From: Neoconidiobolus thromboides FSU 785
Lineage: Eukaryota; Fungi; Entomophthoromycota
Length of the DNA stretch: 36,374 bases
Reading direction: 5' to 3'
Assembly (NCBI GenBank): GCA_025603075.1
Contig: MU626452.1
Span: 1 to 36,374, forward strand
The translations under genes were made by a program, and so were the position numbers. The notes beneath the pieces were generated by a model. It was not told the DNA's origin. It did not search any database and saw nothing but the letters and a program-made list of their open reading frames with translations. Below, in pieces: positions 5,869 to 36,110 of the stretch (positions are counted from its first letter, which is position 1; each line of letters starts with the position of its first letter).

Positions 5869-6296
5869 TTTTTCAATAAATGGAGTTAATTATAAAGTAA
5901 AAAAAAATCATTAGAGCATTTTTACGAATTTAAGGAATGATTTAATTAATTTGAATCAGTAATATAGAAAGAGAATTTTTAACCACAATTTGTCTTTAAA
6001 CTGTACTAGATTTGTTTAATATTTTTTATTATATGTTTAGGTTTGAAAAGCATAATAGGTAAAACAAATAGCCTTTTTAAGGTTTTCTTTTATAAATAAA
6101 CTATATTATTAATAAACTGTTATGTTGGATTAAGTTAACCCCTTTAATGCCTTAACTTGCAAAAAAGTTCATATAATTTTAATGTAATCCTTATTTATCT
6201 ATAAACTTTACTTTTAAAGTCCTTAGAACGCTACAATCAGAAATCATGCTCTCTTTTCAAAAATAATATGGAAATATACTATATAATAAACAATAT

Positions 6297-6394
6297 GAGG
6301 ATGTATTTTTATGTTTAAGAATTTTACTAATAATTATTCCGCTCAAATAGTGCTTAAAGGATGGGAAAAGTAATGAAGCCAAAAAAACATCCCT
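6297..6394 (-). mobile_element. MITE copy B (98 bp)
   Basis: Reverse-oriented copy with a perfect ATAT/ATAT duplication. Confidence 0.9.
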
Positions 6395-6497
6395 ATATGG
6401 TTATTCGTTATATTATAATATAATATTTTATTAAAAATAAATACATTAATAGCTTATAACTCAATGAATATTTTCATCTTTTAAATCCATAAATAGC

Positions 6498-7223: not shown

Positions 7224-10200
7224 ATGGCAGCAAGTGTACAAAAAGAGGTAATTTTATTCCTTTGATCTCTCACCCTTCTAACCCCTTTTTAGTTTCGTAA
7301 GCGCGATTTCCTTCGTAGCTTAGAGGAACCAGCCCAATCTCGATGGTCTAAAGAAAAATTATTTGAAGCTGAAGTGAAACCTGGTAAAAAAAAGTTTTTT
7401 GCTACTTTCCCTTATCCTTATATGAATGGTCGTCTTCATTTGGGTCATGCCTTTACTTTTACTAAAGTGGAATTCGCTATGGGTTATCAACGTCTTCAAG
7501 GTAAAGAGTGTTTATTCCCTTTTGGTTTACATTGCACTGGTATGCCAATTAAGGTAAGTAGAGAAAATGTAGGTTAAGGAAGTAAAGCTTATATCTTTTA
7601 ATAGGCTTGCGCTGATAAATTAGCTAGAGAAATTGAAATGTTTGGCACTAATTTTGAACTTCCAAAAGGTATTTTTAGAAATTTTATTAGTAATATTTAT
7701 TAATGATCCTAGTCACAGAGTCTTTAGAAAACTTGGAAGTTACTGAAGCTAAAGATAGTCCAAAAAAAGTAATTGAATTGATACTTAATAGGAAAATAAA
7801 TAAATTAACCTTAAATAGCCTGGAAAAGTAGCTGCTAAATCCACTGGGGCTACATACCAATTTCAAATTATGCAATCCCTTGGTGTACCAACTCAAGAAA
7901 TTGCCAAATTTGCTGATCCTATGCATTGGTTAACTTATTTTCCTCCACATGCCATTGTAACTATAATTCTTTAATATTATAACATTCTTTAATTGTTTTC
8001 TTATTTTTAGGGAGATGTTAAGTCTTTAGGTTGTAGAGTTGACTGGCGTCGTTCATTCGTTACCACCGATGCTAATCCATTTTATGATTCTTTTGCGCGT
8101 TGGCAATTTAACAAATTGAAGTCCATTGAAAAGATTAAATTCGGTGAAAGATACACTATCTTTTCACCACTTGATGGACAGCCTTGCATGGATCATGATC
8201 GTTCTTCTGGTGAAGGTGTAGGACCACAAGAATATACAGCTATCAAAATTCAAGTAACCAAATGGACCGAAGCTAGTAAAAAAATAGTTGAAGCTGAACC
8301 AAAGTTAGCTGGTAAAAAAATATTTTTAGTAGCAGCTACTTTACGCCCAGAAACTATGTATGGGCAAACTAATTGTTTTGTTGGTGTTAATCTTAAATAT
8401 GGAGCTTATGAATTCAAAGATGATGAAGTTTATATAATTACTGAACGTGCAGCTAGAAATATGGCCTTCCAAGGATTAACCAAAGTTAAAGGAGAATTCC
8501 CTAAATTAGCAGATTTTATTGGTAGTGATCTTGTTGGATGTAAAGTTAATGCACCATTATCAAAACATGAGCAAGTTTATGTACTCCCAATGGAAAATGT
8601 ATTAGCTAATAAAGGTACTGGTATCGTTACTTCCGTTCCAAGTGATTCTCCAGATGATTATATTACAGTACAAGATCTTATTAAAAAAGCAGCTTACTAT
8701 AAAATTCAAACAGAATGGATTGAGCCTTTTGCTCCAATTCCAGTAATTAAAACTGAACAATATGGTGATCTTACTGCTCCTGCTGTATGTGCTGAACTTA
8801 AAATTGTGTCTCAAAAGGATCGTGATTCTTTAGCTAAAGCTAAAGAAATTGCTTATAAAGAAGGATTTTATAATGGTATTATGATTATTGGGGAGTACAG
8901 TGGTAAAACAGTACAAGAAGCTAAACCATTAGTCAAACAATTATTAATTGAACAGAAACTTGGATTTAATTATTGTGAACCAGAAAAGAATGTAGTGTCT
9001 CGTTCTGGAGATGATTGTGTAGTTGCACTTTGTGATCAATGGTATTTAGATTATGGAGAAGAAAAATGGTTAGAACAGGCTAAAAAATGTTTATCTCAAT
9101 TAAATACACATGGTGAAGAAGCAAGACATAGCTTTGAATCCACTTTAAATTGGTTAAATCAATGGGCTTGTGCTCGTTCTTATGGTTTAGGATCTAAAGT
9201 ACCTTGGGATGAATCCTTTTTAATTGAGTCTTTATCCGATTCTACTATTTATATGGCTTATTATACAATTGCTCATTATTTACAAGGTAATACTTTAGAT
9301 TCTTCTAAACCAAATGAGTTACAAATTACTGTAAATCAAATGACGGATGAAGTTTGGGATTATATTCTTTTAGATGGGCCAAAACCCCAATCTTCTTCTA
9401 TTTCGATAGAAAAATTAGATCTTCTCAAATCTTCTTTAGATTATTTTTATCCACTTGATCTTCGTGTATCTGGAAAAGATCTTATTCCAAACCATTTAAC
9501 TTTCTGTATTTATAATCATGTTGCTTTATTTAAAGAAGAAAAATGGCCACAAGCTTTTAGAGCTAATGGTCATTTGCTTCTTAATGGAGATAAGATGTCT
9601 AAAAGTACTGGTAATTTCATGACAGTAAGTGATTCTGTAAGTAAATATGGTGCTGATGCTACACGTATTGCATTAGCTGATGCTGGCGATTCAATTGAAG
9701 ATGCCAATTTTGATGAAAAGACAGCTGACACTGCTATTTTACGTTTATACACTTTGTTAGAATGGATTGAAGAAGTATTGGCTAAGCCAGAAAACTTAAG
9801 AAAAGGACCAAAGGACTCATTCCATGATACTGTATTCGAAAATGAAATGAATCAATTAATTCAATTAACCGAAGCTGCTTATGAAAGTATGTCATTTAGA
9901 GAAGCTTTGAAGAATGGCTATTATGAATTACAAATTGCTAGAGATATTTATAGAGAGGCTTCAATTGAAGAAGGTATGCATTATGATCTTGTTATGCGAT
10001 TTATTGAAGTACAAGCACTTTTAATTGCTCCATTTGCTCCCCATTATTGTGAACATTTATGGGGTACCATTCTTAAAAAAGAAGAATCTATTCAACTTGC
10101 TTCATGGCCACAAATCAGCACCCCTATTGATGATAGCGTTTTGAAATCTGCTGAATATTTACGTAAAACAATTAAGAAAGTAAGAGATCAAGAAATTACT

Positions 10201-10668
10201 TCACAAAAGAAAGGAAAGAAAGGAAAAGCAGCTGTTGCCTTTGATCCAAGTAAACCAAAATCTTTAACTCTATATATTGCTTCTACTTTCCCTGATTGGC
10301 AAGAAAAAGTTATTGGTATACAAAAACAATATTATAATGAATCAACGAAAACATTTGATGATGTTGCTTTAAGACAGGCTTTAACTGAGGCTAAATTAAT
10401 GGCAGATAAAAAAGTGATGCCTTTCGTTAATGAAATTAAAAAGAGAGTTATTGCTAATGGTTCGAATGCTTTTAATAGAGCTTTAACTTTTGATGAAGAG
10501 AATACAATTAGGAGAAATGAAAGTTATATTAAAAGAAATTTAGGTTATCAAGAACTTCAAATTGTTGTTTTACCTAATCATCCAGATGCTGCTTACTTTG
10601 AAAACTTACCTAATGCTGCTCAAACTTCTTTACCTGGGGAACCTAGTGCTGCTTTGGTTAATCTCTAA
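7224..10668 (+). CDS. CDC60: Cytosolic leucyl-tRNA synthetase
   Basis: [17 protein letters not shown] (HIGH motif), CP1 editing domain ([21 protein letters not shown]), GKDLIPNHL and KMSKS. Five 5' introns, then one exon of about 2.66 kb. Confidence 0.98.
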
Positions 10669-10913
10669 ATTAATCAAATAGAAAAATAAATTGATTTGTA
10701 ATCTATCTTCATGTTACCGTTTTTTACATTTGAGTTTTATAATTAAGATTTGAATAATGAATAAAATTACTACAATTTAACTTTTATTGTAGAATAAATA
10801 AGCGCTATTGATACAACTCGTTAGATAAATTAAATGTTAGTACAGCCGGAGGAACGGGAATCAACTCACATGTTCATATATTTTAATTACTTTGACATCA
10901 ATTTATACAATTT

Positions 10914-11011
10914 GGGAATGTTTTTTTGGCTTCATTACTTTTTCCATCTTTTAAGTGCTACTTGCGTGGAAAAATTGTTAGTAAAATTCTTAAATACAAA
11001 AATACATCCCC
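10914..11011 (+). mobile_element. MITE copy C (98 bp)
   Basis: Perfect ATTT/ATTT duplication. Confidence 0.9.
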
Positions 11012-11811
11012 ATTTAATAGATTATTTTATTATAAATCAAACTTTTAATACCTATTTTATCATTTTTGTAAATAATTTTGTATTCCTCATTTAAATTACT
11101 ATTATGTATTCTAATATAAATATGTTTAATGAAGTTTTCAAATCCAATTGGTAGATTCATATCAAACTTTATGTAGCTTTGTTTAACTTGGATCTCGAAT
11201 TTTACTTTAATTAAAATATATTTATTAGTTTTGGTAAAGGCGAATCTATAAACTTAGAATTCCGATTGATTAATTTTGTTTTTGAACTTCAGTTTTTTCA
11301 TCCTCTTCTTGAATTTGTTAAAAACCCTGTTAATTTTCAAGCCCAAAAGCAAAAGCAATGCGACGGAGCGCCGCATTACCTACTCATACTAAATAAAAGA
11401 GGATTTCAATAAATAATTTAATTACCTATTAACATATATTGATCTTTAATAGTACTACAGAACCCATCTTGATCTAAAAGGCCTAAACTCAAAGTTATAC
11501 TTACTAGTAGTGATGTATTAAATGAAATTACCTTGGACACGAGCACATTCTCTAACAGACAAAACTCCAAGTTCGTGAAAATGTATAGGATTACACTAAC
11601 AATAAATATTTGCTATTTCATATAAAAATATACTAATTATTCTAGCCATTGGATGAATATTAGTTGTAATTGTATTTGATTCAGCTCTTTTATAATTTCT
11701 TGGAAGCTTATTTTTCATCCATCAAATCTTTAAAGAATTGGTAACTCACCCTAAATAATCAATTGTTAACATATATTATTAACATTCTATTGTTCTATTA
11801 AAATTGCAAAA

Positions 11812-11892
11812 GTTTCATTATTTTTTCCATCTTTTAAGTACCATTGAGTGGAAAAATTGTTAGTAAAATTCTTAAACACAAAGATACATCCC
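11812..11892 (+). mobile_element. MITE copy D (left end missing)
   Basis: Core and right terminus ATACATCCC are present; lies in the presumed intron of the methyltransferase remnant. Confidence 0.8.
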
Positions 11893-12450
11893 ATATAATA
11901 TTAAAAAAGCATCAAAAGTTTACAATTTAAATCGTCAAAAAATGATGTGATTGCCTTGTTTTAGCCAACAACTAAACAAAATAGATAAATAAATAACAAT
12001 TGTAAGTAAAATAATAATAATTTATGTTAAACCATTTATCAATCGAACTCCTCATATAAATTCATCATAAAATACTTGAAACCTTTCACTAAAAGTTTAT
12101 AACATTACTCAACGATCATTTTAGTTTAACGATTGAATTAATACATAAAAGCTCGATTGAGAATGGATTCAGTAACTTTATAATTAACTTTTAAATTCTA
12201 AACCAACTGGTTTATCTATTATTAGTCCGTTTAGATCGACAAGCTATTTGCCTTTGTATCTTCTTGATTTAAAGAGCCTGTAAATTGAATTCTATCAAGT
12301 GCTCCACTACTTAGGTTGGTAACTTTATTATCACTATTCCAGAATTCAAAGTTGTATAAATAAAATATTTTACAACTTATCTTCGTATTAAAGTTATTCT
12401 CATTCTATGTTAATTTATGAATCAATAATAATAAAATTAAACCATTCGCT

Positions 12451-12486
12451 TTCAACAATTCAACAATTCAACAATTCAACAATTCA
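12451..12486. repeat. Microsatellite (TTCAACAA) x4.5
   Basis: Directly visible. Confidence 0.9.
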
Positions 12487-14052
12487 CCTTGTCTTTGCTC
12501 CATTTATACAATTCAATTCATTCTAAAATAGAATTTAATAAACTGAATGTTTAACAAATAAAGCTTACCTACCTATCTATATCCCAGGCTAAAGTATCTA
12601 ATTTATTACTCTTATAGTATTTGTATTTGTTTTGATCCTTTAAACTTAGTCGTACAATGATAAAATTAAGCCATAAAATTCAACTAGTGATTATGATTAT
12701 AAAATATAAGAGCTCTTTTTTATATTTCTTCATATTCTATTCAACGTAACTCAATATAAGTTATGTAACTATTGTACTGAACTCACTTTTTCTTAAAAGC
12801 TTCTATCTAAACCATTAAACTTGTTATCTATATAAGTCAATCCATTTTTTGTTTCTGGAGATATGACCACAGGATTTATATTCTTTTGATTTTATTTAGA
12901 CACTATTGTAAATATACTGATATTGGTTTGCAATAGTTTCCCAAATTCAAGTTGTTGATAAATTCAATGATGAACTAATTATGCTTACTTTAGCACTTAC
13001 AACATGTAATCTATTACTAATACTAGCGTTTTTCCCATCCGAGTATTTGACATCATCTAACTTCCTTAATTTTATCTCAACTCTATCAAATTCATTATAA
13101 TCAAAGTCATTCTTAATAGAATTAAATCGAATTGATGTTTCTTTCTATATAAAAAGATAAACTAAAGCTACAAAGGATAGAATTAGCACTTACTTTCTTT
13201 GGAATAACTTTTATACTACCAATAAATATACCACATTTTTTCATAATACCATTTTGGTTGAATTTACTATAGCCGTTTTCTTTTTGCTTATTAATCTGAT
13301 TGTAGTTATCATATTCTTCTATATATCCATTAATGTTTCGATTAAACTTATGAGAATTCTTGTTATTCCTTTGAAAATCTTCACGTATTTTCAATTCTTT
13401 ATAAACCTAATTTGATTAATACCATTTTTCTTAGTATTGAGCCTATTTACTCACCTTTTGCCTCTACCCTGACCAAAATTAAAAGGACCCTCCACGTTTT
13501 TCTTAGTTTTAATTCTTTCTGGATTTCCTTTAACCAGCTTATCCTTTATTAACTTATTTACGCTTCCTTTGTGATTACTCCGACCAAGCCTTAGATAATT
13601 CTTATCACCCCCTTTATTAAAGTTAAAGGAATCTTATCTTCCCTGTTCCTGTTCCAAATTAAATCTATCGCTAATGCCCTCATTTTTACTCCTACACAAT
13701 TCGAAACAATCCACATTATTTCCTTCAATAGCTTTTAAAGCTTCTTCAGATAAATAGGGACTCAAGTGTTCATAATAATCATTTTTATTATAAAAGTAAA
13801 TTGAAAAATCCATAGTTCTGAAAAATAACTTTTAAAATTCAAAAAATGTTTTTTATAGGCATTGTTCTGTGACGTAAATAAATGCATTTTTAACACAGGG
13901 TAATAAGCAAAATTCTGCTATATAGTGCAGTCAAAAAGTAAATAAATTAAATCAGAACCTTATAGCATTAATCAGTAAAAAGTTATAAATTAAAGTTTAG
14001 AGTTTTATTATTTTAAGTTTAAACACTTATTTTGATGTAAAAACTTATATAA

Positions 14053-14145
14053 GAGGAAGTTTTTCCTGATTTCATTACTTTTCCATTTTTTGAGCGCTAT
14101 TTGAGTGGAAAGATTGTTAGTAAAATTCTTACAAAACACATCTCC
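14053..14145 (+). mobile_element. MITE copy E (93 bp)
   Basis: ATAA/ATAA duplication; diverged termini GAGGAAG...CATCTCC. Confidence 0.85.
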
Positions 14146-14360
14146 ATAATGAAAATTTACTAAATAACTAAAGATGCTTTTATTTTATAAAACTTAATGT
14201 AAATTTAAATAAATCTAATAATAATTTTCGTAAATATTAATTTAACTTTTTTAATACAATTTTAAAATATTTATTCTGATTTTAATAGTTATAAGTTAAA
14301 CAATTAAATTTAGCTATTTAGTTAGGTAGTCGGAAGTTTTTAACAAATTTGATAAAATAT

Positions 14361-14455
14361 AGAGATGTATTGTGTTTAAGAATTTTATTAACAATTCTTC
14401 TACTCAAATGACGCTTAAAAGATGGGAAAAGTAATGAAGCCAAAAAAACATCCTC
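14361..14455 (-). mobile_element. MITE copy F (95 bp)
   Basis: Reverse copy, flanks ATAT/ATGT. Confidence 0.85.
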
Positions 14456-14600
14456 ATGTATTTTTAATATTTTTTATTATATTTTTAAAATAATAAGCTT
14501 AATACATAACTTATTTTAATATGGCTAAAAAAGTGAGTTTTTATTTACTGAACTGTATATTTATTTATTGGACTATTTATCAATTTTATAAATATTATAT

Positions 14601-14695
14601 GAGGATATATTTTTTTAAAGAATTTTACTAATAGCTTTTTTACTCAAATAGTGCCTAAAAATAGAAAAAGTAACAAAACTATAAAAAACATCCTT
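14601..14695 (-). mobile_element. MITE copy G (95 bp, more diverged)
   Basis: Reverse copy, flanks ATAT/GTAT. Confidence 0.8.
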
Positions 14696-14756
14696 GTATT
14701 GTTATTTGTCAATTTCATAAGTTATAATGTATATATTAAAACAGGCTTATATTATA

Positions 14757-18207: not shown

Positions 18208-18720
18208 TTAAACATCCAAATCAAAAAACCAGTCAAATTGTAAAATAAGGGATTCCACTAACATATATAAAGGTTGTAATTGAGGATGAAGATTATTATC
18301 TTTAGGTCGAGCAATAGTTGGACCAAATACAATAGCTAAATTATTAGCATCCATTAAATTCTCTTCAGAATATTCGCTTATCATTTTTAAATGTTCAATT
18401 AAAAATTTTAGTGTACTTAATTGTTCTTGACTTAATTGTTCTAATATTATATCTTTATATCCCATTAATCGTTCATTATAATCCTGAATTCCTAATTTAA
18501 TTTAATTTAATTTAATTATTAGTATATTATTATATTATAATATTCTTATTTATTATAATTCTTACTTGATGTTTCAATAATATTATCATAAGCAATAAAA
18601 GGTATTAAAGGTTCTGTCAATTCTCTAAAATATAATTTAAGTATACCAGTAATGGTATTAATATCAGGTTCAGATGCTAAAGATACTGGACCTAACAAAT
18701 AATATTAAATGAAATAAAAC

Positions 18721-18760
<40 letters not shown>

Positions 18761-21574
18761 ATTCTATTATAAAATAATACCTACCAATATTAATAAATTT
18801 TAATTTCCAATCCTTGATTTGTTTTGAATTACCAGATAATCGATAAATACCTTGACAATTGAAACAATTCCTTGAATTTAATTCTTCAATACACCTTTTA
18901 GGTACATAAGCAATATGATCACTATCTCCAATTAAAGTAAACCAAACGGAATCGCTATCTGTAAAAAACATTTCTTTATTTGTATTACTTGGTATGGATG
19001 ATGTTGATATTGATGATTTATGAAATAATTTGCCCATAATTTTGTTACTCTTAGTTTTATTATTACGTAATAATTTGATATCTAAATAATAAACAAGATT
19101 GTTATTATTATATTATTATTATTATTATTATATTATTATTATTATTATTATATTATTATTATTATTATTATTATATTATTATTATTATTATTATATTATT
19201 ATTATTTATACTTACCATCATTGGATTTGGGTGAACTTAAAGATGTAGTTAAACTATTATTACTTATTACTAAAATATAAAATATTAATAGTTTATATTA
19301 ATAAATATAAATTATAAATAAATTTACCATCTTGTTTAGCAATAAATTTTAAATTATGATTTCTATTTAATTTAGTAATAATTTGAATGAAGTTTGATTT
19401 CTTATGATTTAAATTAAAGGCATTAATATGATCTTTAATAGCTTTAAACCAATCATTAAATTGAATTAAATCTTCTGTTAAAAATAAAGGATTCAAATTG
19501 GACTGTGTTTTAATAAAAAATACATTGTTCTTTTTACTATGCGTTTTATCTGCTTCAGATATAGTTGCTCCTGCTAAATCATACCATCCTTTAAATTTGT
19601 ATTCTTTTTTTTCTTTTAGTTTAAAGATTAACAAAGTAGCTTCTATTAATAATACATAATATTGTTTCCAATGTTTTGTAGAGGATAATGTTCCACTATC
19701 ACATAATTCACTTTTGATACTTATTACTCCTTGTTTACCATCAATCTAAAATTAAATTAAATTAAATTAAATTAAAATTTATATTTTATATTTTTATATT
19801 ATTTAAAAGTAAATTACCTCGTCGATTAATATAATATTATTATCCTTTAAATTAACTTCATGTTTATCATCTACTATTAAATTACTTTCATTAAAAATAA
19901 TTTCATTATTATTCATTAGTTCATTATTATTCATTAGTTCATTATTATTCATTAGTTCATTATTATTATTATTATGGTAATCTTCATAATTATTACTATC
20001 AAACTCATGATTATATTTTACTACTTCATTGTAATTATCTTCTTCTCTATCATTTTCATCTAAATTAATCGGATTACCATCAATCTCAATAGTTTTCAAA
20101 AATTCATCGCCTAAAATTTCATCATTATCTTCAATATAAGAATGAAACTCTGCATGACTTGGAGAAGCAACTCCTAAGTTTAAATTTTCAATATCAATCG
20201 TTAATTGAGATTCATTTAATTGATTAATGATTTCGTTGTTTTCTTCTTCTTCACCTAAATACATTTGAGCAAATTGACTATATGTTATATCTAAGGAATT
20301 GTTTTCTCCTAGTTTAAATATAATTAATTAAATTACTTATAGTTCAAAATTTTATTTTTTAATTAATAGAATTAAAATAGTTTATAGCTTACCAGGTGGT
20401 AATAATACGGACTCCATACTTAATTGAGTTTCCGTTAATAATGGATCTTGTTCCACATTACTTTGAATTATATTTAATTCTTCCTTAATTGCTGCTGATA
20501 AATCACTGATACTGATTTCAACATTTGGTTTTGCTAATTCATCTTCATGACTATAATTATCGTTACTTTGTAACTCTTGTAAATCATGTTTAAAATTTTG
20601 ATTATTTTGATTTAAATGAGATTCTTGATTATCGATTTCTTCATGTTTATAATTATTTATTGTTTGTAAACCATTTAATTCATATTCAGATCCCTGATTA
20701 CTCTTCTTTAAGTAATATTCTTGATTATTCCTTTCGTCATGTTCGTAATTATTTATTGTCTTTAAGCCTTCTGTATCATATTCAAAATTTGGATTACTTT
20801 CATTCAAATAATATTCTTGAGCTTCATTGATATGTTCTTTATCTTCGTCCTCGTTGTATCGATCTTCTTCCCGCCTTTCATCTACATAATTACTTTCTTT
20901 ATACCTTTCCAAATCATTCCTTCTTCTTTCCTCTTCTTCATACTCTTTCTCTTCATATCTTTCTTCTTCATGTGCATCTTTATTGTATCTTTCATTAATA
21001 TTTCCACTATCTGTGTACCTTTCTTCTAAATACTTTACTTCTAACGATTGCTCATACTTTTCCTCCTCATACCTTTCCCCTTCTTCAAACTTTTCTTCTG
21101 TATACCTTTTTACTTTATCCTCCTCCTCATGCTTTTCATCATGGTTTTCTTGATACCTATACTCATTGTACCTCTCATCATATCTTTCTTCATCCATTTC
21201 TTCTTCATGCCTTCCTGCTTTCTCATATCCTTCATCAATATATTTTTCTTCATACTCTTTTTCATACCTTTCATTTTGATGAATTTCTTGATTATACCTC
21301 GATTCTTCATATGTTTCCCTTAAATAGTTAAAATCCTCATACTTCACTTTTTCCACCTCTTCATACCTCTCTTCATCCCTTTCAATTTCCCTATATCCTT
21401 CATTTACACACCTTTCCTCATCCTCTTCTTTTTCCTTCTCCTTTGCATTCTCGCTTTTTCTTTCCTGAATTAGCTCTTCAGCTGGAAATAAGTCATTGGT
21501 AAAATTTAAATTTGGGAGAACGATCGAATTAAAATTCATATCTGACATGATATTATATTCAACATTATTATTAC

Positions 21575-21614
<40 letters not shown>

Positions 21615-21857
21615 TAAATCCATTTCCTTTTGTTGAGTTATGCTCTTATTGGAAGTGAAAATGGACTTATTAATGTTAAGATTATTATCCTCTTGGCTTG
21701 ACATCAAATTCAAGTTTGGTGTTGTTGAATTCAATTTTATCGTAGTTTCATTTAAGTATGGATCATCTGAATGGTTGATATCGTATTCATTGTTATTTTT
21801 AAGCTGCTTAGTTGTAATTTCATTATTCATTTGAACTAAAAAACAAAATAAAATCAA
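18208..21857 (-). CDS. PH- and RhoGAP-domain protein with long acidic/Asn-rich N-terminal region (5' end not located)
   Basis: RhoGAP: GIYRLSG (arginine finger) and LIEHLKMISEYSEENLMDANNLAIVFGPTI. PH: KQGVISIK...WKQYYVLL...KKNNVFFIKT...WFKAI. Exons are linked by GT-AG introns; the listed start of ORF 20382..21857 sits in a splice acceptor tract. Confidence 0.85.
19102..19207. repeat. Compound (ATT)n microsatellite with higher-order 20-23 bp periodicity, filling an intron of the RhoGAP gene
   Basis: TATATT(ATT)n units repeated about 5 times, ending just before the reverse-strand donor CTTAC. Confidence 0.9.
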
Positions 21858-23340
21858 TATTCTAAGAAAATCGAAACAAAAGTCAATTAATTGTTAGCAA
21901 TAAAATATCGAGATTTGATTTATTATCTTTTATTTTAAAACCATAAAATGGATTTATTCTTTTTGAATTAAAAAATAAACGCAGAATATTAACTATTTTT
22001 AGTAGCTTAGGTAATAACTTGGGATACCTTTGAAATTTCATAAACTCAGATATTTGAAAGCAATCTGGGGTTCTATAAAGTTAATAGATTCCAGATTTTT
22101 AGTTAAGGTTAATAAGAACTTAGCATTGTAAGAAAAGTCAAAACAAGTTTGTTGTTAGAATAACTAGGGATAGAATATTCAATTTTAAAATGTTATAAAC
22201 TTCTTTGAGTTGATTAAAATTACACAACAATAAAATATAAAACAGTTGTTTAATTATAACAATTTGTTATGACTTTTCCTAAATCTTACTATTAAATAAT
22301 GAATATCTGGACATTCTTACTAAATATTGAATTTCACTTCAATAAGCACAACAAGAAATCCTTAACATATCATATTAAACTTCAATCTTAACCCAAACTT
22401 ATAATTTGTGTTATATTTCACTTAACTTTTCAATTCAACTAACCCAACTCTGTTCCACCTAACTATTTAATTTAAAAATTAGACAAATTAAATACTTAAA
22501 TTTTATTAATCCTTTAAATAACAAACATTTTAAATTAATTCTTATTCAAATAAATTGGGATACTCAATCTGTTTTGAATTATTAAAGCATTGTTTCTAGT
22601 TTACTCAGTTCAAATTTAATAATTTATATTCATCGATTTATACTTCCTTCTATAATTAATCAAGTATAATTTCTTCATAGTAATTAAGTAAAATACCTTT
22701 TATTTTTTAGCAAAAGCTACTACATAATCAAACTTGAAATTTACTATTCGACTTCAGTTTTATAACAAAAGCGTCACTTTCCTTTTGAAACTACAACTTA
22801 ACATAGGGCAACACCTTAACTACTTTTTTCACTACTCTGGCTTTGCTATCTCTGGTTAGAAACTTACTTTCTAGTCTTTCTTAACTAATAAAATAACTTA
22901 TGGTTTTAATAGCTATAGGTTTTTTAAGTAATGTTTTGAGCAAACAAATTAATCACATTATTTGATTAAAAGCAAAAGCAATTTCCACTGGTATTATTAA
23001 TATTGTTATAAAAAATATGAATTCTAGCTGATTTATTTGAAAAGTTATGCTATTTCAAATGTATTTTGTTATACTAGCTTATTTTGTGACAATGATGTTA
23101 ATATCAAAAATGAATATAACAATATATAGAATTAAATTTATTATTATTAGCTAGACTTTTATTCTTAATAGATAAAGATGGGTATATAAAGAAATTTTTA
23201 CTATAGATTTATATTAAATTTATTTTAAATTGTCCAAGTGTTACTTTATTAATCCATGTTGGTATACTTTTATCAAAAATTGCTAATTTTAAGCTTGAAA
23301 TGTCAAAATAGCTTAATAGAAACAAATTTATTTAATATAA

Positions 23341-23437
23341 GAGGGTGTTTTTTTGGTTTCCTCACTTTTCCATTTTTAAAGCACTATTTAAGTGGAAAAG
23401 TTGCTAGTAAAATTCCTAAACAAAAAAATACATCCCC
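23341..23437 (+). mobile_element. MITE copy H (97 bp)
   Basis: Perfect ATAA/ATAA duplication. Confidence 0.9.
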
Positions 23438-23949
23438 ATAAATTTATGATAAAAATTTCTTTATAAATCATCTTTATCTATTAAGAGTAAAGGTTTAGCT
23501 AATATAAATAATAGCTTTCTTATTAATATTAAATTATCAAACTCGGTCATATTATTTTTTATAAAAATACTTTAATTTTTTTATTAACAGCTTTGTTTAT
23601 ACTTTAAACACGATTAATTAAACTAGCATAAGTCATAGATATTTTGTTTTCCATGAATACAATAATTTTTTTGATTTTATCATACATACTCTTTAATCCT
23701 TTTGTCCCAAATACTTTTTGAGTCTCCTCTTCGTTTGATTATATTATACCAATTTTTAGAGTTTATAGAGCTTTTATTCAATCAAACTACGCCTTTTTTA
23801 AGTACAATATTCAAATAAAATTTAACTGCAAACAATTCATTTTTTTATAGAAAAAATCCATAAAATCCCAAAAATGCGCAATCCAAAAAATATAGAGAAA
23901 AAAGAACAAAATCCTTAACATTGTCTTTGATATAAAAAGGGGATATAAA

Positions 23950-25310: not shown

Positions 25311-25552
25311 ATTAGAAAAGGATATACATTAAAATAAAACTTTGTTTTTAATTAAAAAGCTTTATATTTAACTTTTTAATTATGGCTTATTAAATACTTA
25401 ATTATTGATTTAAAAAAATAATGATTATGAATTAAAATTTAATTATAAAGCATAAAATTATCAAATAATATTCTTAGGTTAGAATAAGATGCTACTTTAT
25501 TTTAAAAGTTTAACACGACTTAAAAAAACAGGGGTAAAAACTAGAAGGATGA

Positions 25553-25894
25553 TTACCAAAACCAGCCAAAGTTATTGAAAGGACCGAAGCCATCACAGCC
25601 ATCGAAGCAGCCACCACATCCACCAAATCCACCACATCCACCAAATCCACCACATCCACCACATCCACCATTAAAACAGCCACCACAATTGCCATCAAAG
25701 AAACCATCAAAAACACCACCACCGAAACCATCAAAACCAAAAGGAATAAGTCCAGTAAAGCCAAAATCACATGATCCACATCCCCAACAATCATCAAAAC
25801 ATCTTCTAACAGGGGTAGAGCCCAAACCAGTTGGGGCAGTGAAGACAATAGTAGCTAATAAAGCAATAATGAAAATAACAGTTTTATTAAACAT
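25553..25894 (-). CDS. Small secreted Gly/Cys/Phe-rich repeat protein (113 aa)
   Basis: ATG at 25894 gives a signal-peptide-like MFNKTVIFIIALLATIVFTAP, a dibasic VRR site, then 12 Cys in GGCGGF/FDG repeats. The region is locally GC-rich and intronless. Confidence 0.8.
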   Translation of the reverse strand: MFNKTVIFIIALLATIVFTAPTGLGSTPVRRCFDDCWGCGSCDFGFTGLIPFGFDGFGGGVFDGFFDGNCGGCFNGGCGGCGGFGGCGGFGGCGGCFDGCDGFGPFNNFGWFW

Positions 25895-26223
25895 TTTTAA
25901 TCCAGTCAATGGAGTTTTATTTGAATTCTTTGTATAAATTCATTATATTTATACTTTGTTTTATATATTCTAGTTAAATTGATTATTTGATGATTTTTAA
26001 CAATTCATCTATCTTTAATTTTGATTTATCTGATTTTTGAGTTTGAACTTGATAATATTATTTTTAATTTTCTAAATTTAGGAAGTGAGAGTTTTAAATT
26101 ATATGTCAACTTATAATTCACCCATAATACTAAGTGATCCTATCAAAATGATATTACTAAATTAAATAAAAATAAAAAATTATCATTTCGGTATAAAAAT
26201 TTAATCAAAAAATATAGACATAG

Positions 26224-34849: not shown

Positions 34850-34943
34850 GGTGATGTATTTTTTGGCTTCACCACTTTTTCTATTTTTTAAGCACTATTT
34901 GAGCGGAAAAATTAGTAAAATTCTTAAACAAGAATACATCCCC
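34850..34943 (+). mobile_element. MITE copy I (94 bp)
   Basis: Core and termini match; the flanks (TTAT/ATAC) do not form a clean duplication. Confidence 0.85.
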
Positions 34944-35140: not shown

Positions 35141-36110
35141 TTATACAGATTTGAAATGCTGTTGCTTGAACTTTTCTACTTTGATACAGGTTCTTAATTT
35201 ACCAAAATATACGTTGTAAGCACTAAAGTAGAGTTGAGTTACACAAGAAATCCAAAGCAATCAAAATAGCAGCAATGGCACCAAGCTCATATTAAAATTA
35301 AAATAGATCTGTAACTAATCAAGTGGTCAATCAAGTAAATAGAAAAAAAGATCTGAAAGCATGCAGACAGAGTAAAGAGAGATAGTAAAATAAATTCTTA
35401 ATGAGCTTCTTGATTTTTTTGCCACATCAAAGCTTGTTTTTAATTATCAAAGACTAAAAATTGAGTGTAAGCTACTTGGAGAATAATCCGATTTTATATA
35501 ACAGGCCATTATCATTAATAAACTTATAAATGAAATTGTAGTAAAATGATAAAATGGTATACTTGACCAATGAAGTTTTAGGATATATCAAACAAGCCGA
35601 CTTTGCAATTTATAGATAAAATTTGAACTTGGGGGTGCTTTTTGACTTCATTGCTTTTTCCATTTTTTAAGCGCTATTTGAATGGAAAATTTGCTGGTAA
35701 AATTCTTAAACGCAAAAATACATCCCCACTTAGTAGCTAAAAAAATATATAATACTGGATGAAACACTATTGATAAAACCTTTAGTATAAATATATCTAA
35801 TGGAGTTGATTTTGATGGCAATATTTAATCTTTCCAACGTCAAGAAGGCAGAAACGATAAATTGATAAAAAAGGAATGAAACTGTAAAAAACCCTAAATA
35901 TTGATATGAACTAGAATTATCAACAACATCGTCTTCTCTTATTAGTATATATATTATGCCAGATATCCAAACTAAAGGTACCATAAGACCAATGATTACT
36001 ATTAATATGACTAATTTCAAACCTTGTATATATTTATTTATTCTTATTGCTAGATAGAGAAGAATGATACTGGTGACTACAAATGGGGCTGTCCTAATTG
36101 GTTTCAGAAT
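35141..36110 (-). pseudogene. Multi-pass membrane (7TM/GPCR-like) pseudogene interrupted by a MITE
   Basis: The 5' part has hydrophobic helices and FLTLERL (TM3 E/DRY-like). Beyond the MITE a single frame gives further hydrophobic segments with 6 internal stops. Confidence 0.55.
35631..35727 (+). mobile_element. MITE copy J (97 bp)
   Basis: Perfect ACTT/ACTT duplication. Confidence 0.9.

Follow-up and report, generated by a model that had tools for sequence, protein, structure and literature searches.

Scaffold MU626452.1 of the Neoconidiobolus thromboides FSU 785 (Entomophthoromycotina) assembly GCA_025603075.1 very probably carries a genuine fossil of a cytosine DNA methyltransferase gene. 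The fossil lies on the minus strand at positions 11330-11595 and comprises the last 56 codons, distributed over the last three exons, of a Dim-2-type enzyme whose remainder has been removed. The window analyzed here is the entire scaffold of 36,374 nucleotides (nt). The surviving 3' end would include catalytic motifs IX and X as well as the natural stop codon, and the GenBank model splices it through a 1393-nt intron onto four orphan exons. The locus would thus offer a physical remnant of the loss of a 5-methylcytosine (5mC) enzyme, which in fungi is usually inferred from absence alone.

A preliminary description of this DNA, made from its letters alone, had recognized three minus-strand mini-exons joined by introns of 49 and 46 nt and had placed them in apparently intergenic DNA. 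The exons and introns are exactly as it described and are identical to those of the deposited model, but the locus is neither intergenic nor hidden, as the GenBank protein KAI9292381.1 already reads the three exons identically and only their methyltransferase ancestry is unannotated. The relic is laid out as follows.

11595-11532, minus strand: relic exon A (deposited exon 5), 64 nt, motif IX, reading CNPIHFHELGVLSVRECARVQ(G)
11531-11483, minus strand: intron A/B, 49 nt, GT..AG, phase 1, ancestral position, guanine-cytosine (GC) content 24.5%
11482-11426, minus strand: relic exon B (deposited exon 6), 57 nt, reading (G)LLDQDGFCSTIKDQYMLI(G)
11425-11380, minus strand: intron B/C, 46 nt, GT..AG, phase 1, ancestral position
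11379-11330, minus strand: relic exon C (deposited exon 7), 50 nt including the TAA at 11332-11330, reading (G)NAALRRIAFAFGLEN

Exon A stops in phase 1 within the Gly codon of QG, and the spliced exons encode a 56-amino-acid (aa) peptide with SVRECARVQG (motif IX, at 11553) and IGNAALRR (motif X, at 11380). Against a hidden Markov model (HMM) of the enzyme family, exon A scores 14.1 bits at profile positions 960-978 and exon B 13.9 bits at positions 978-1000, while exon C, which holds motif X and the natural C-terminus, scores 3.4 bits; the three are colinear over positions 960-1011. The tail has a GC content of 38.7%, compared with approximately 24% in the surrounding DNA, and an in-frame codon signal of +0.28 to +0.48 bits per codon.

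An exhaustive phmmer search of the 56-aa tail against 1.84 billion representative proteins returned full-length proteins with RFD, BAH and C5 cytosine methyltransferase (C5-MTase) domains at E values from 8.6e-9 to 7.6e-4. The fungi matched include Acaulospora, Radiomyces, Ambispora, Geosiphon, Entomophthora muscae, Phycomyces, Basidiobolus, and Apophysomyces, the last with a protein named 'Dim-2'. These full-length fungal proteins are 759-1204 aa long (E = 8.6e-9 to 7e-5), with RFD/DUF7893/BAH domains and a complete PF00145 domain (104-152 bits), and the tail match sits at their extreme C-termini. Among structures in the PDB, the tail has an ungapped match to the last ~51 residues of mammalian DNMT1 (E = 2.7e-5). 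A comparison by hhalign of the whole deposited protein with an alignment of 10 fungal relatives gave a match of 98.3% probability (E = 2e-14) between its residues 207-259 and positions 971-1023 of the 1043-position profile, and left the rest of the protein unmatched. The Pfam check that had been suggested for the spliced peptide gave 17.4 bits to PF00145, under the gathering score of 22; the protein search suggested alongside it, carried out with phmmer, gave the E values above. The whole deposited protein reaches 22.4 bits, barely over the gathering score, and this represents fragment homology only, to profile positions 198-309 of 324. As the preliminary description had proposed, the peptide is the motif IX-X C-terminus of a C5-MTase of the DNMT1/Dim-2 superfamily, and phmmer, hhalign and the block-chain test described below agree on this.

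The narrower assignment to the DNMT1 class has to be revised. The tail scores 35-51 bits against a Dim-2-like clade of early-diverging fungi, approximately 29 bits against plant CMT2, and 24-26 bits against plant MET1, and DNMT1s of the canonical type from Coemansia and basidiomycetes lie outside the 45 best matches, at less than 23.6 bits. Both a clade-specific tail signature and best reciprocal similarity place the tail in the Dim-2-like clade, to which, as judged from sequence, it is clearly closer than to canonical DNMT1/MET1 (~24-26 bits for the latter). The name 'Dim-2' for this clade is taken from the Apophysomyces annotation and from PMC7862722, Neurospora DIM-2 itself being outside the comparison; published surveys place Dim-2 in early-diverging fungi (PMC7862722). 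It had also been suggested that motif X had drifted from GNAVPPP to GNAALRR. Because intact clade members read GN(A/S)V(A/P)R.(I/V)AF.LG, with a stop a few residues later (GNAVARP and GNSVPRN, for example), the GNAALRRIAFAFGLE of the window is the normal form of its lineage, not a decayed GNAVPPP, and the real signs of relaxation are five substitutions in other invariant columns.

The introns carry a record of descent. Exon boundaries and phases of the Basidiobolus and E. muscae genes were obtained by placing each protein on its own gene. Exon 17 of the Basidiobolus gene (67 nt) begins QGRVLHY and ends ...VREVARAQ|G in phase 1, and its relic counterpart of 64 nt has the same boundary and phase; exon 18 (57 nt) ends ...DQYRII|GN in phase 1, and relic exon B is likewise 57 nt with the same phase. 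The acceptor at 11596 is the counterpart of the phase-0 intron preceding QGRVLHY. All three relic boundaries are therefore common with Basidiobolus in position and phase, and one, the II|GN intron, is common with E. muscae. Because these positions and phases match, the gene would have been inherited vertically in N. thromboides, and chance, retrocopying and foreign origin appear to be excluded. A processed (retro-)pseudogene was ruled out, as both ancestral introns are still present. At the same conserved phase-1 intron, a 1069-aa Basidiobolus ranarum protein (P0148) departs from all of its relatives directly after ...ARGQG, and its gene model probably reads into the intron.

In the 56-aa tail, 5 of the 19 columns that are invariant in the family have changed (R12G, F25L, G33S, V46A and L54F). 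Invariant columns were defined over 12 functional members from three phyla, of which ten differ at none of them, one at a single column and one at two. Because five of the 19 columns have changed, compared with 0-2 in functional members, constraint for methyltransferase function has been relaxed in the tail. Neutral simulation found that five such changes need only ~0.12 substitutions per site, and that the frame and all ten splice-site bases survive in ~15% of runs, with indels uncounted. The intact frame is consequently no proof of selection, and a case for purifying selection on the tail was dropped (P ~0.15, not significant).

The preliminary description had expected the rest of the methyltransferase gene across 11.2-14 kb, and the methods applied there (Pfam, tblastn, hhalign, HMM and chain test) find the terminal fragment only. 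No methyltransferase, BAH or RFD match was returned by Pfam for the 36 open minus-strand pieces of at least 20 aa in 11.1-14.2 kb, and single tail exons were unmatched as well. The protein-to-genome alignment that had been proposed was carried out as a very permissive tblastn of 18 relatives against the whole window; its significant matches were the three tail exons only. A weak match of a BAH-end segment at 13105-13010 (E = 0.29) was rejected, as it was unsupported by hhalign, HMM, or chain test (z = 0.78 and 1.3). With the family HMM, the best score in the three frames of the 1393-nt intron (intron 4 of the deposited model) was 2.5 bits and fell in the wrong region of the profile, and the three frames of deposited exons 1-4 gave -3.5 bits, equaled by 52 of 100 shuffles. 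The block-chain test looks for ordered 7-residue blocks of a position-specific scoring matrix in all three frames, tolerates frameshifts and introns, and is compared with 300 dinucleotide shuffles. It found the tail at z = 15.3, a score reached by none of the 300 shuffles, and still at z = 9.1 when the tail was sought in 1.66 kb. The same test gave z = 0.26 for the enzyme core in intron 4, z = 0.0 for the end of the target-recognition domain (TRD) in 11596-12100, and z = 1.3 for the N-terminus and BAH in exons 1-4.

Individual motifs were also sought by regular expression. Motif I (F.G.GG) was unmatched in the three frames of 11330-13813, where HMM and chain tests were likewise silent; motif IV (PCQ) was absent from the coding strand of the locus, and Pfam, tblastn, HMM and chain test were likewise negative for it. 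Motif VI (ENV) occurs only once in the locus, at 11552, where it overlaps exon 5 out of frame, and motif VIII (Q.R.R) does not occur there. Motifs IX (RE.AR.QG) and X (GNA/S) alone are present and aligned to the family. For RFD (PF12047) and tandem BAH (PF01426), the open pieces had no Pfam match and hhalign was blank for residues 1-204 of the deposited protein. Two look-alikes in intron 4, LAWDIDR for motif II and GLILLLL for the lead-in to motif IV, were discarded, as neither HMM nor chain statistics backed them. Approximately 95% of the ancestral enzyme thus appears to be gone from the DNA, including RFD, BAH, motif I, the motif IV Cys, motifs VI and VIII, and the target-recognition region, and the locus is therefore predicted to be unable to methylate DNA and catalytically dead. 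That it looked dead had been said before, and the failure to detect motifs I, IV, VI and VIII bears this out.

We searched for a paralog with the catalytic region of the E. muscae enzyme, from the closest lineage, as query in a word-indexed search with a length filter. The 135 matches among annotated proteins came from E. muscae, Massospora, Basidiobolus, Glomeromycotina, plants, basidiomycetes, and others, and none was from Neoconidiobolus or Conidiobolus. The exhaustive tail search, in a library clustered at 50% identity, returned no further N. thromboides protein. Together, the annotated proteins and the DNA of this scaffold point to loss of the enzyme from N. thromboides.

Upstream of the relic, intron 4 contains the piece that the preliminary description had taken for a preceding exon, a copy of a miniature inverted-repeat transposable element (MITE), and little that resembles coding sequence. 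The features that bear on the missing part are these.

11721-11599, minus strand: open piece containing YKRAESNTITTNIHPMA, followed by an in-frame TAG at 11598-11596 before CNPIHF
11596-12988, minus strand: intron 4 of the deposited model, 1393 nt, 24.6% GC, apparently non-coding
11792-11895, strand not assigned: MITE copy in intron 4, with ~18 nt at its relic-facing end missing or replaced and the rest aligning well
10907-11025, strand not assigned: second MITE copy, just downstream of the relic stop and before the convergent leucyl-tRNA synthetase (LeuRS) gene, which ends at 10668

The letters of the YKRAESNTITTNIHPMA piece are where they had been reported, but the homology claimed for them, to the TTVTNPEPM that precedes motif IX, is unsupported; against the homologous sub-profile the piece scores -0.2 bits, a value that 56 of 300 shuffles equal, and only TITT fits the family's TIxTT. 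The suspicion that the junction near 11596-11633 is broken proved right. Without splicing the TAG intervenes, and with an alternative 38-nt intron (11633-11596) removed the junction is out of phase, so the connection to CNPIHF is broken either way. The codon log-likelihood ratio of intron 4 is negative in all frames and its composition is intergenic. It also holds a perfect (TTCAACAA)x4.5 tandem repeat at 12451-12486.

The MITE noticed just upstream in the preliminary description is the copy at 11792-11895. It belongs to a family of ~100 nt with terminal inverted repeats GGGGATGT...ACATCCCC, of which 10 scaffold copies were aligned (approximately one per 3.6 kb): 1336-1445, 6283-6401, 10907-11025, 11792-11895, 14049-14172, 14370-14482, 14576-14722, 23336-23440, 34859-34918, and 35626-35750. 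Five of them are clustered in 10.9-14.7 kb around the relic locus. The core of the enzyme, approximately 950 codons, would have been physically removed by deletion or rearrangement and not mutated away in place, because ~0.12 substitutions per site is too mild a divergence to erase that many conserved codons. The breakpoint would most likely lie between 11596 and ~11810, beside the truncated MITE, and the copy at 11792-11895 is a candidate deletion scar.

GenBank annotates the gene at 11330-13813 on the minus strand, with KAI9292381.1 (P0121) as its product, a 260-aa 'hypothetical protein K502DRAFT_352058' with no Pfam domain on record. Residues 205-260 are the 56-aa tail, with 100% identity. 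Mapped to the DNA, the protein occupies seven exons separated by introns of 78, 86, 49, 1393, 49, and 46 nt, of which the first four exons are not part of the relic.

13813-13690, minus strand: orphan exon 1
13611-13455, minus strand: orphan exon 2
13368-13194, minus strand: orphan exon 3
13144-12989, minus strand: orphan exon 4, introns 1-3 also lying inside 12989-13813

Searched against 5.8 billion proteins, KAI9292381.1 matched only itself, and metagenome contigs yielded no homolog either. Exons 1-4 have a weak, frame-specific codon signal of +0.14 to +0.29 bits per codon. If exon 4 is read through its donor at 12988, an in-frame TGA is met 13 codons on, at 12949-12947, giving a simpler alternative of 217 aa. 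Intron 4, at 1393 nt, has 16-30 times the length of the model's five remaining introns and of the 54-nt LeuRS intron. An AlphaFold2 prediction from the single sequence was uninformative (predicted local distance difference test score, pLDDT, of 33) and gave no confident fold. Intron 1 (13612-13689), whose 78 nt are divisible by three, begins with a weak GTAAAA donor, and an in-frame TAA at 13636-13634 lies inside it, between open stretches of the same frame. The predictor may have introduced this intron to bypass a nonsense codon; if so, the orphan part of the gene may be decaying too. KAI9292381.1 is probably a chimeric gene model in which the relic has been absorbed onto orphan exons.

Where splicing is concerned, the deposited models of this scaffold cannot be relied upon, because the model of the neighboring LeuRS gene is truncated at its 5' end. 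Some 148 residues are missing from the N-terminus of the deposited LeuRS (P0001, 914 aa, start at 7870), and tblastn with the LeuRS N-termini of E. muscae and Basidiobolus located their coding sequence at ~7293-7697 (74% and 54% identity) and from 7810. Another deposited model, at 12-1869, encodes 128 aa over 1.86 kb, has no Pfam match, and spans the MITE at 1336-1445, and so resembles the long-intron model of the relic gene.

Several other readings of the locus were weighed. That the resemblance is due to chance, or to splice sites chosen to fit a remembered motif, has next to no likelihood. The junctions had been picked by eye, the Pfam score of the peptide is below the gathering score, and single exons are unmatched in Pfam; yet an independent deposited gene model has the same junctions, E values reach 2e-14, the three exon matches are colinear, none of the 300 shuffles reaches the tail's chain score, and intron positions, phases, and one exon length are common with Basidiobolus. 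There is similarly hardly any probability that the tail belongs to a still-functional enzyme with its core elsewhere, through a split gene or trans-splicing, or to a contaminant or horizontally acquired fragment. Nothing speaks for it directly. Among the annotated proteins matched, none from N. thromboides has a C5-MTase core, and the tail has changes at five invariant residues. Its introns are of a fungal, ancestral kind, and the housekeeping genes on the same scaffold, which shares its composition and MITE family, are ordinary fungal ones. We also consider it very unlikely that a full-length DNMT1-class pseudogene extends across ~11.2-14 kb, having decayed in place with hidden upstream exons, that of YKRAESNTITTNIHPMA included, and a MITE-bearing intron, which is how the preliminary description saw the locus. 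In-place decay would fit the gap of 1393 nt between exon 4 and the tail, about the size of a Basidiobolus-like core with ~60-nt introns, as well as the TITT at roughly the expected distance from the ancestral acceptor, the minus-strand GC skew that persists through 12-13 kb, and the weak BAH-end tblastn match. Against this, core, TRD, BAH and RFD went undetected by five methods while the tail gives z = 15, and a tail divergence of ~0.12 substitutions per site is far too low for equally old neighbors to have vanished. Nor do the shuffle-level score of the YKRAESNTITTNIHPMA exon and the intergenic composition of intron 4 agree with it.

A different possibility is that the deposited 260-aa model is real, an orphan gene having captured the last three exons of the dead enzyme with the tail selected for a non-catalytic role. 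The GT..AG join of the model keeps the frame, the ancestral acceptor at 11596 is intact, and the tail is coding-like in frame, splice sites, GC content, and codon usage; exons 1-4 have their frame-specific codon signal, and the intactness of the tail has a probability of ~0.15 or less under neutrality. We nonetheless hold this reading to be unlikely, and judge it unlikely to the same degree that the junction 12989|11595 is genuine and maintained by selection. The splice would need an intron 16-30 times the length of the other six measured, exon 4 meets an in-frame stop 13 codons past its donor, and the protein has neither a homolog in the databases and metagenomes searched nor a confident predicted structure. 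Five invariant residues have been lost, and the mis-annotated LeuRS nearby makes the scaffold's models weak evidence of splicing. Motifs IX and X, moreover, supply the strands and helices with which the large domain of the C5-MTase fold is completed, and do not form an autonomous module. A fuller version, in which a young orphan gene took over the final three exons of the enzyme, complete with stop codon and ancestral splice sites, after the core had been deleted, and in which selection keeps the tail for a new, non-catalytic role, seems distinctly improbable to us; if true, a gene would have been born by salvaging the end of a dying epigenetic enzyme.

The reading of the locus as a terminal relic of a deleted Dim-2-type gene also has points against it. 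The open frame, the four intact splice dinucleotide pairs, and the coding-like GC content and codon usage are also expected of exons that are still used, and neutrality is neither rejected nor proven (P ~0.15 before indels). The deletion beside the MITE is proposed from one truncated copy. The E. muscae LeuRS locus (L002, QTSX02002262.1) is not syntenic, its downstream neighbor being a WW/FF-domain protein. Lastly, the absence of a paralog covers annotated proteins only, as found by a length-filtered word search and in a library clustered at 50% identity.

If the relic is what it appears to be, an ancestor of Neoconidiobolus had a Dim-2-type enzyme, which was lost so recently that the tail can still be read (~0.12 substitutions per site since constraint was relaxed). 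N. thromboides is then predicted to be without Dim-2-dependent cytosine methylation, unless another class of DNA methyltransferase (DNMT) is present. Surveys of gene families should leave KAI9292381.1 out of their DNA methyltransferase counts even though it just passes the Pfam threshold.

Elsewhere on the scaffold, long (ATT/AAT)n microsatellites occur at 18690-19222 and 21525-21621, inside minus-strand open reading frames (ORFs) and gene models (18208-20264 and 20382-21857). These tracts would encode poly-Asn or poly-Ile-type runs, and a 491-aa ORF among them has no Pfam match. At 25510-25937, ORFs overlap on both strands over a Gly/Cys/Phe-rich repeat (FGGCGGFGG...), whose low complexity mimics motif I in regular-expression scans. 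A ciliate-type genetic code, suggested by two in-frame TAA/TAG codons between open frames and by an open frame that continues past the TAA stop, was ruled out by standard-code ORFs of 2655, 1881, and 1800 nt; standard-code ORFs in this 25%-GC scaffold encode LeuRS, a Utp12/WD40 protein, a C13 peptidase, and an APP1 phosphatase.

The closest known systems are the Dim-2-like enzymes, approximately 900-1400 aa long, of Radiomyces spectabilis (KAI8379795.1), Apophysomyces (KAG0191047.1), Basidiobolus meristosporus (ORX84408.1), E. muscae (KAJ9077490.1), and Acaulospora (CAG8575511.1). The last ~53 residues align with these without gaps at 47% mean identity (32-52%), share the signature ...SVRE.AR.QG(F)LD.D...DQ(Y/H).IIGN...R..AF.LG and a similar end point, and are interrupted by the same tail introns. 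Unlike these enzymes, the relic keeps only ~5% of the protein and has five invariant residues substituted. With canonical DNMT1/MET1 (mouse and human DNMT1, 3PT6, 5GUT and 3AV4, and plant MET1) it shares the superfamily and the layout of motifs IX and X, but it scores ~24-28 bits there compared with 35-51 for the Dim-2-like clade, and its locus has no RFD, CXXC or BAH. The tail of DNMT1 reads GFPD...KHRQVGNAVPPPLA, and the relic does not have its signature GFPD...KHRQ(V/I)GNAVPPPLA; the relic reads GLLDQD...DQYMLIGNAALRRIAF, in keeping with the clade form G(F/L)LD.D...DQY.IIGNA..R.(I/V)AF. An annotated pea protein (Pisum sativum KAI5410970.1, P0122, 297 aa) resembles KAI9292381.1 in having C-terminal methyltransferase motifs without a catalytic core, but it consists of motifs IX-X of plant MET1/CMT type repeated three to four times in tandem, has an unrelated origin, and has no orphan N-terminal part. 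It ranked second in the tail search because the scores of its repeats add up.

DNMT loss is frequent in fungi and includes the ancestral loss of DNMTX in Cryptococcus (PMC7862722), and Zoopagomycota have been described as poor in 5mC and rich in N6-methyladenine (6mA) (PMC11258239). The relic of N. thromboides is an ordinary gene relic that fits this known pattern of repeated DNMT loss and is not a new kind of system. In this lineage, too, the enzyme seems to be gone, and what remains of it is a fragment. Unlike most of the reported losses, which are inferred from absence, this one would have left a physical remnant with conserved introns, since absorbed into a gene model.

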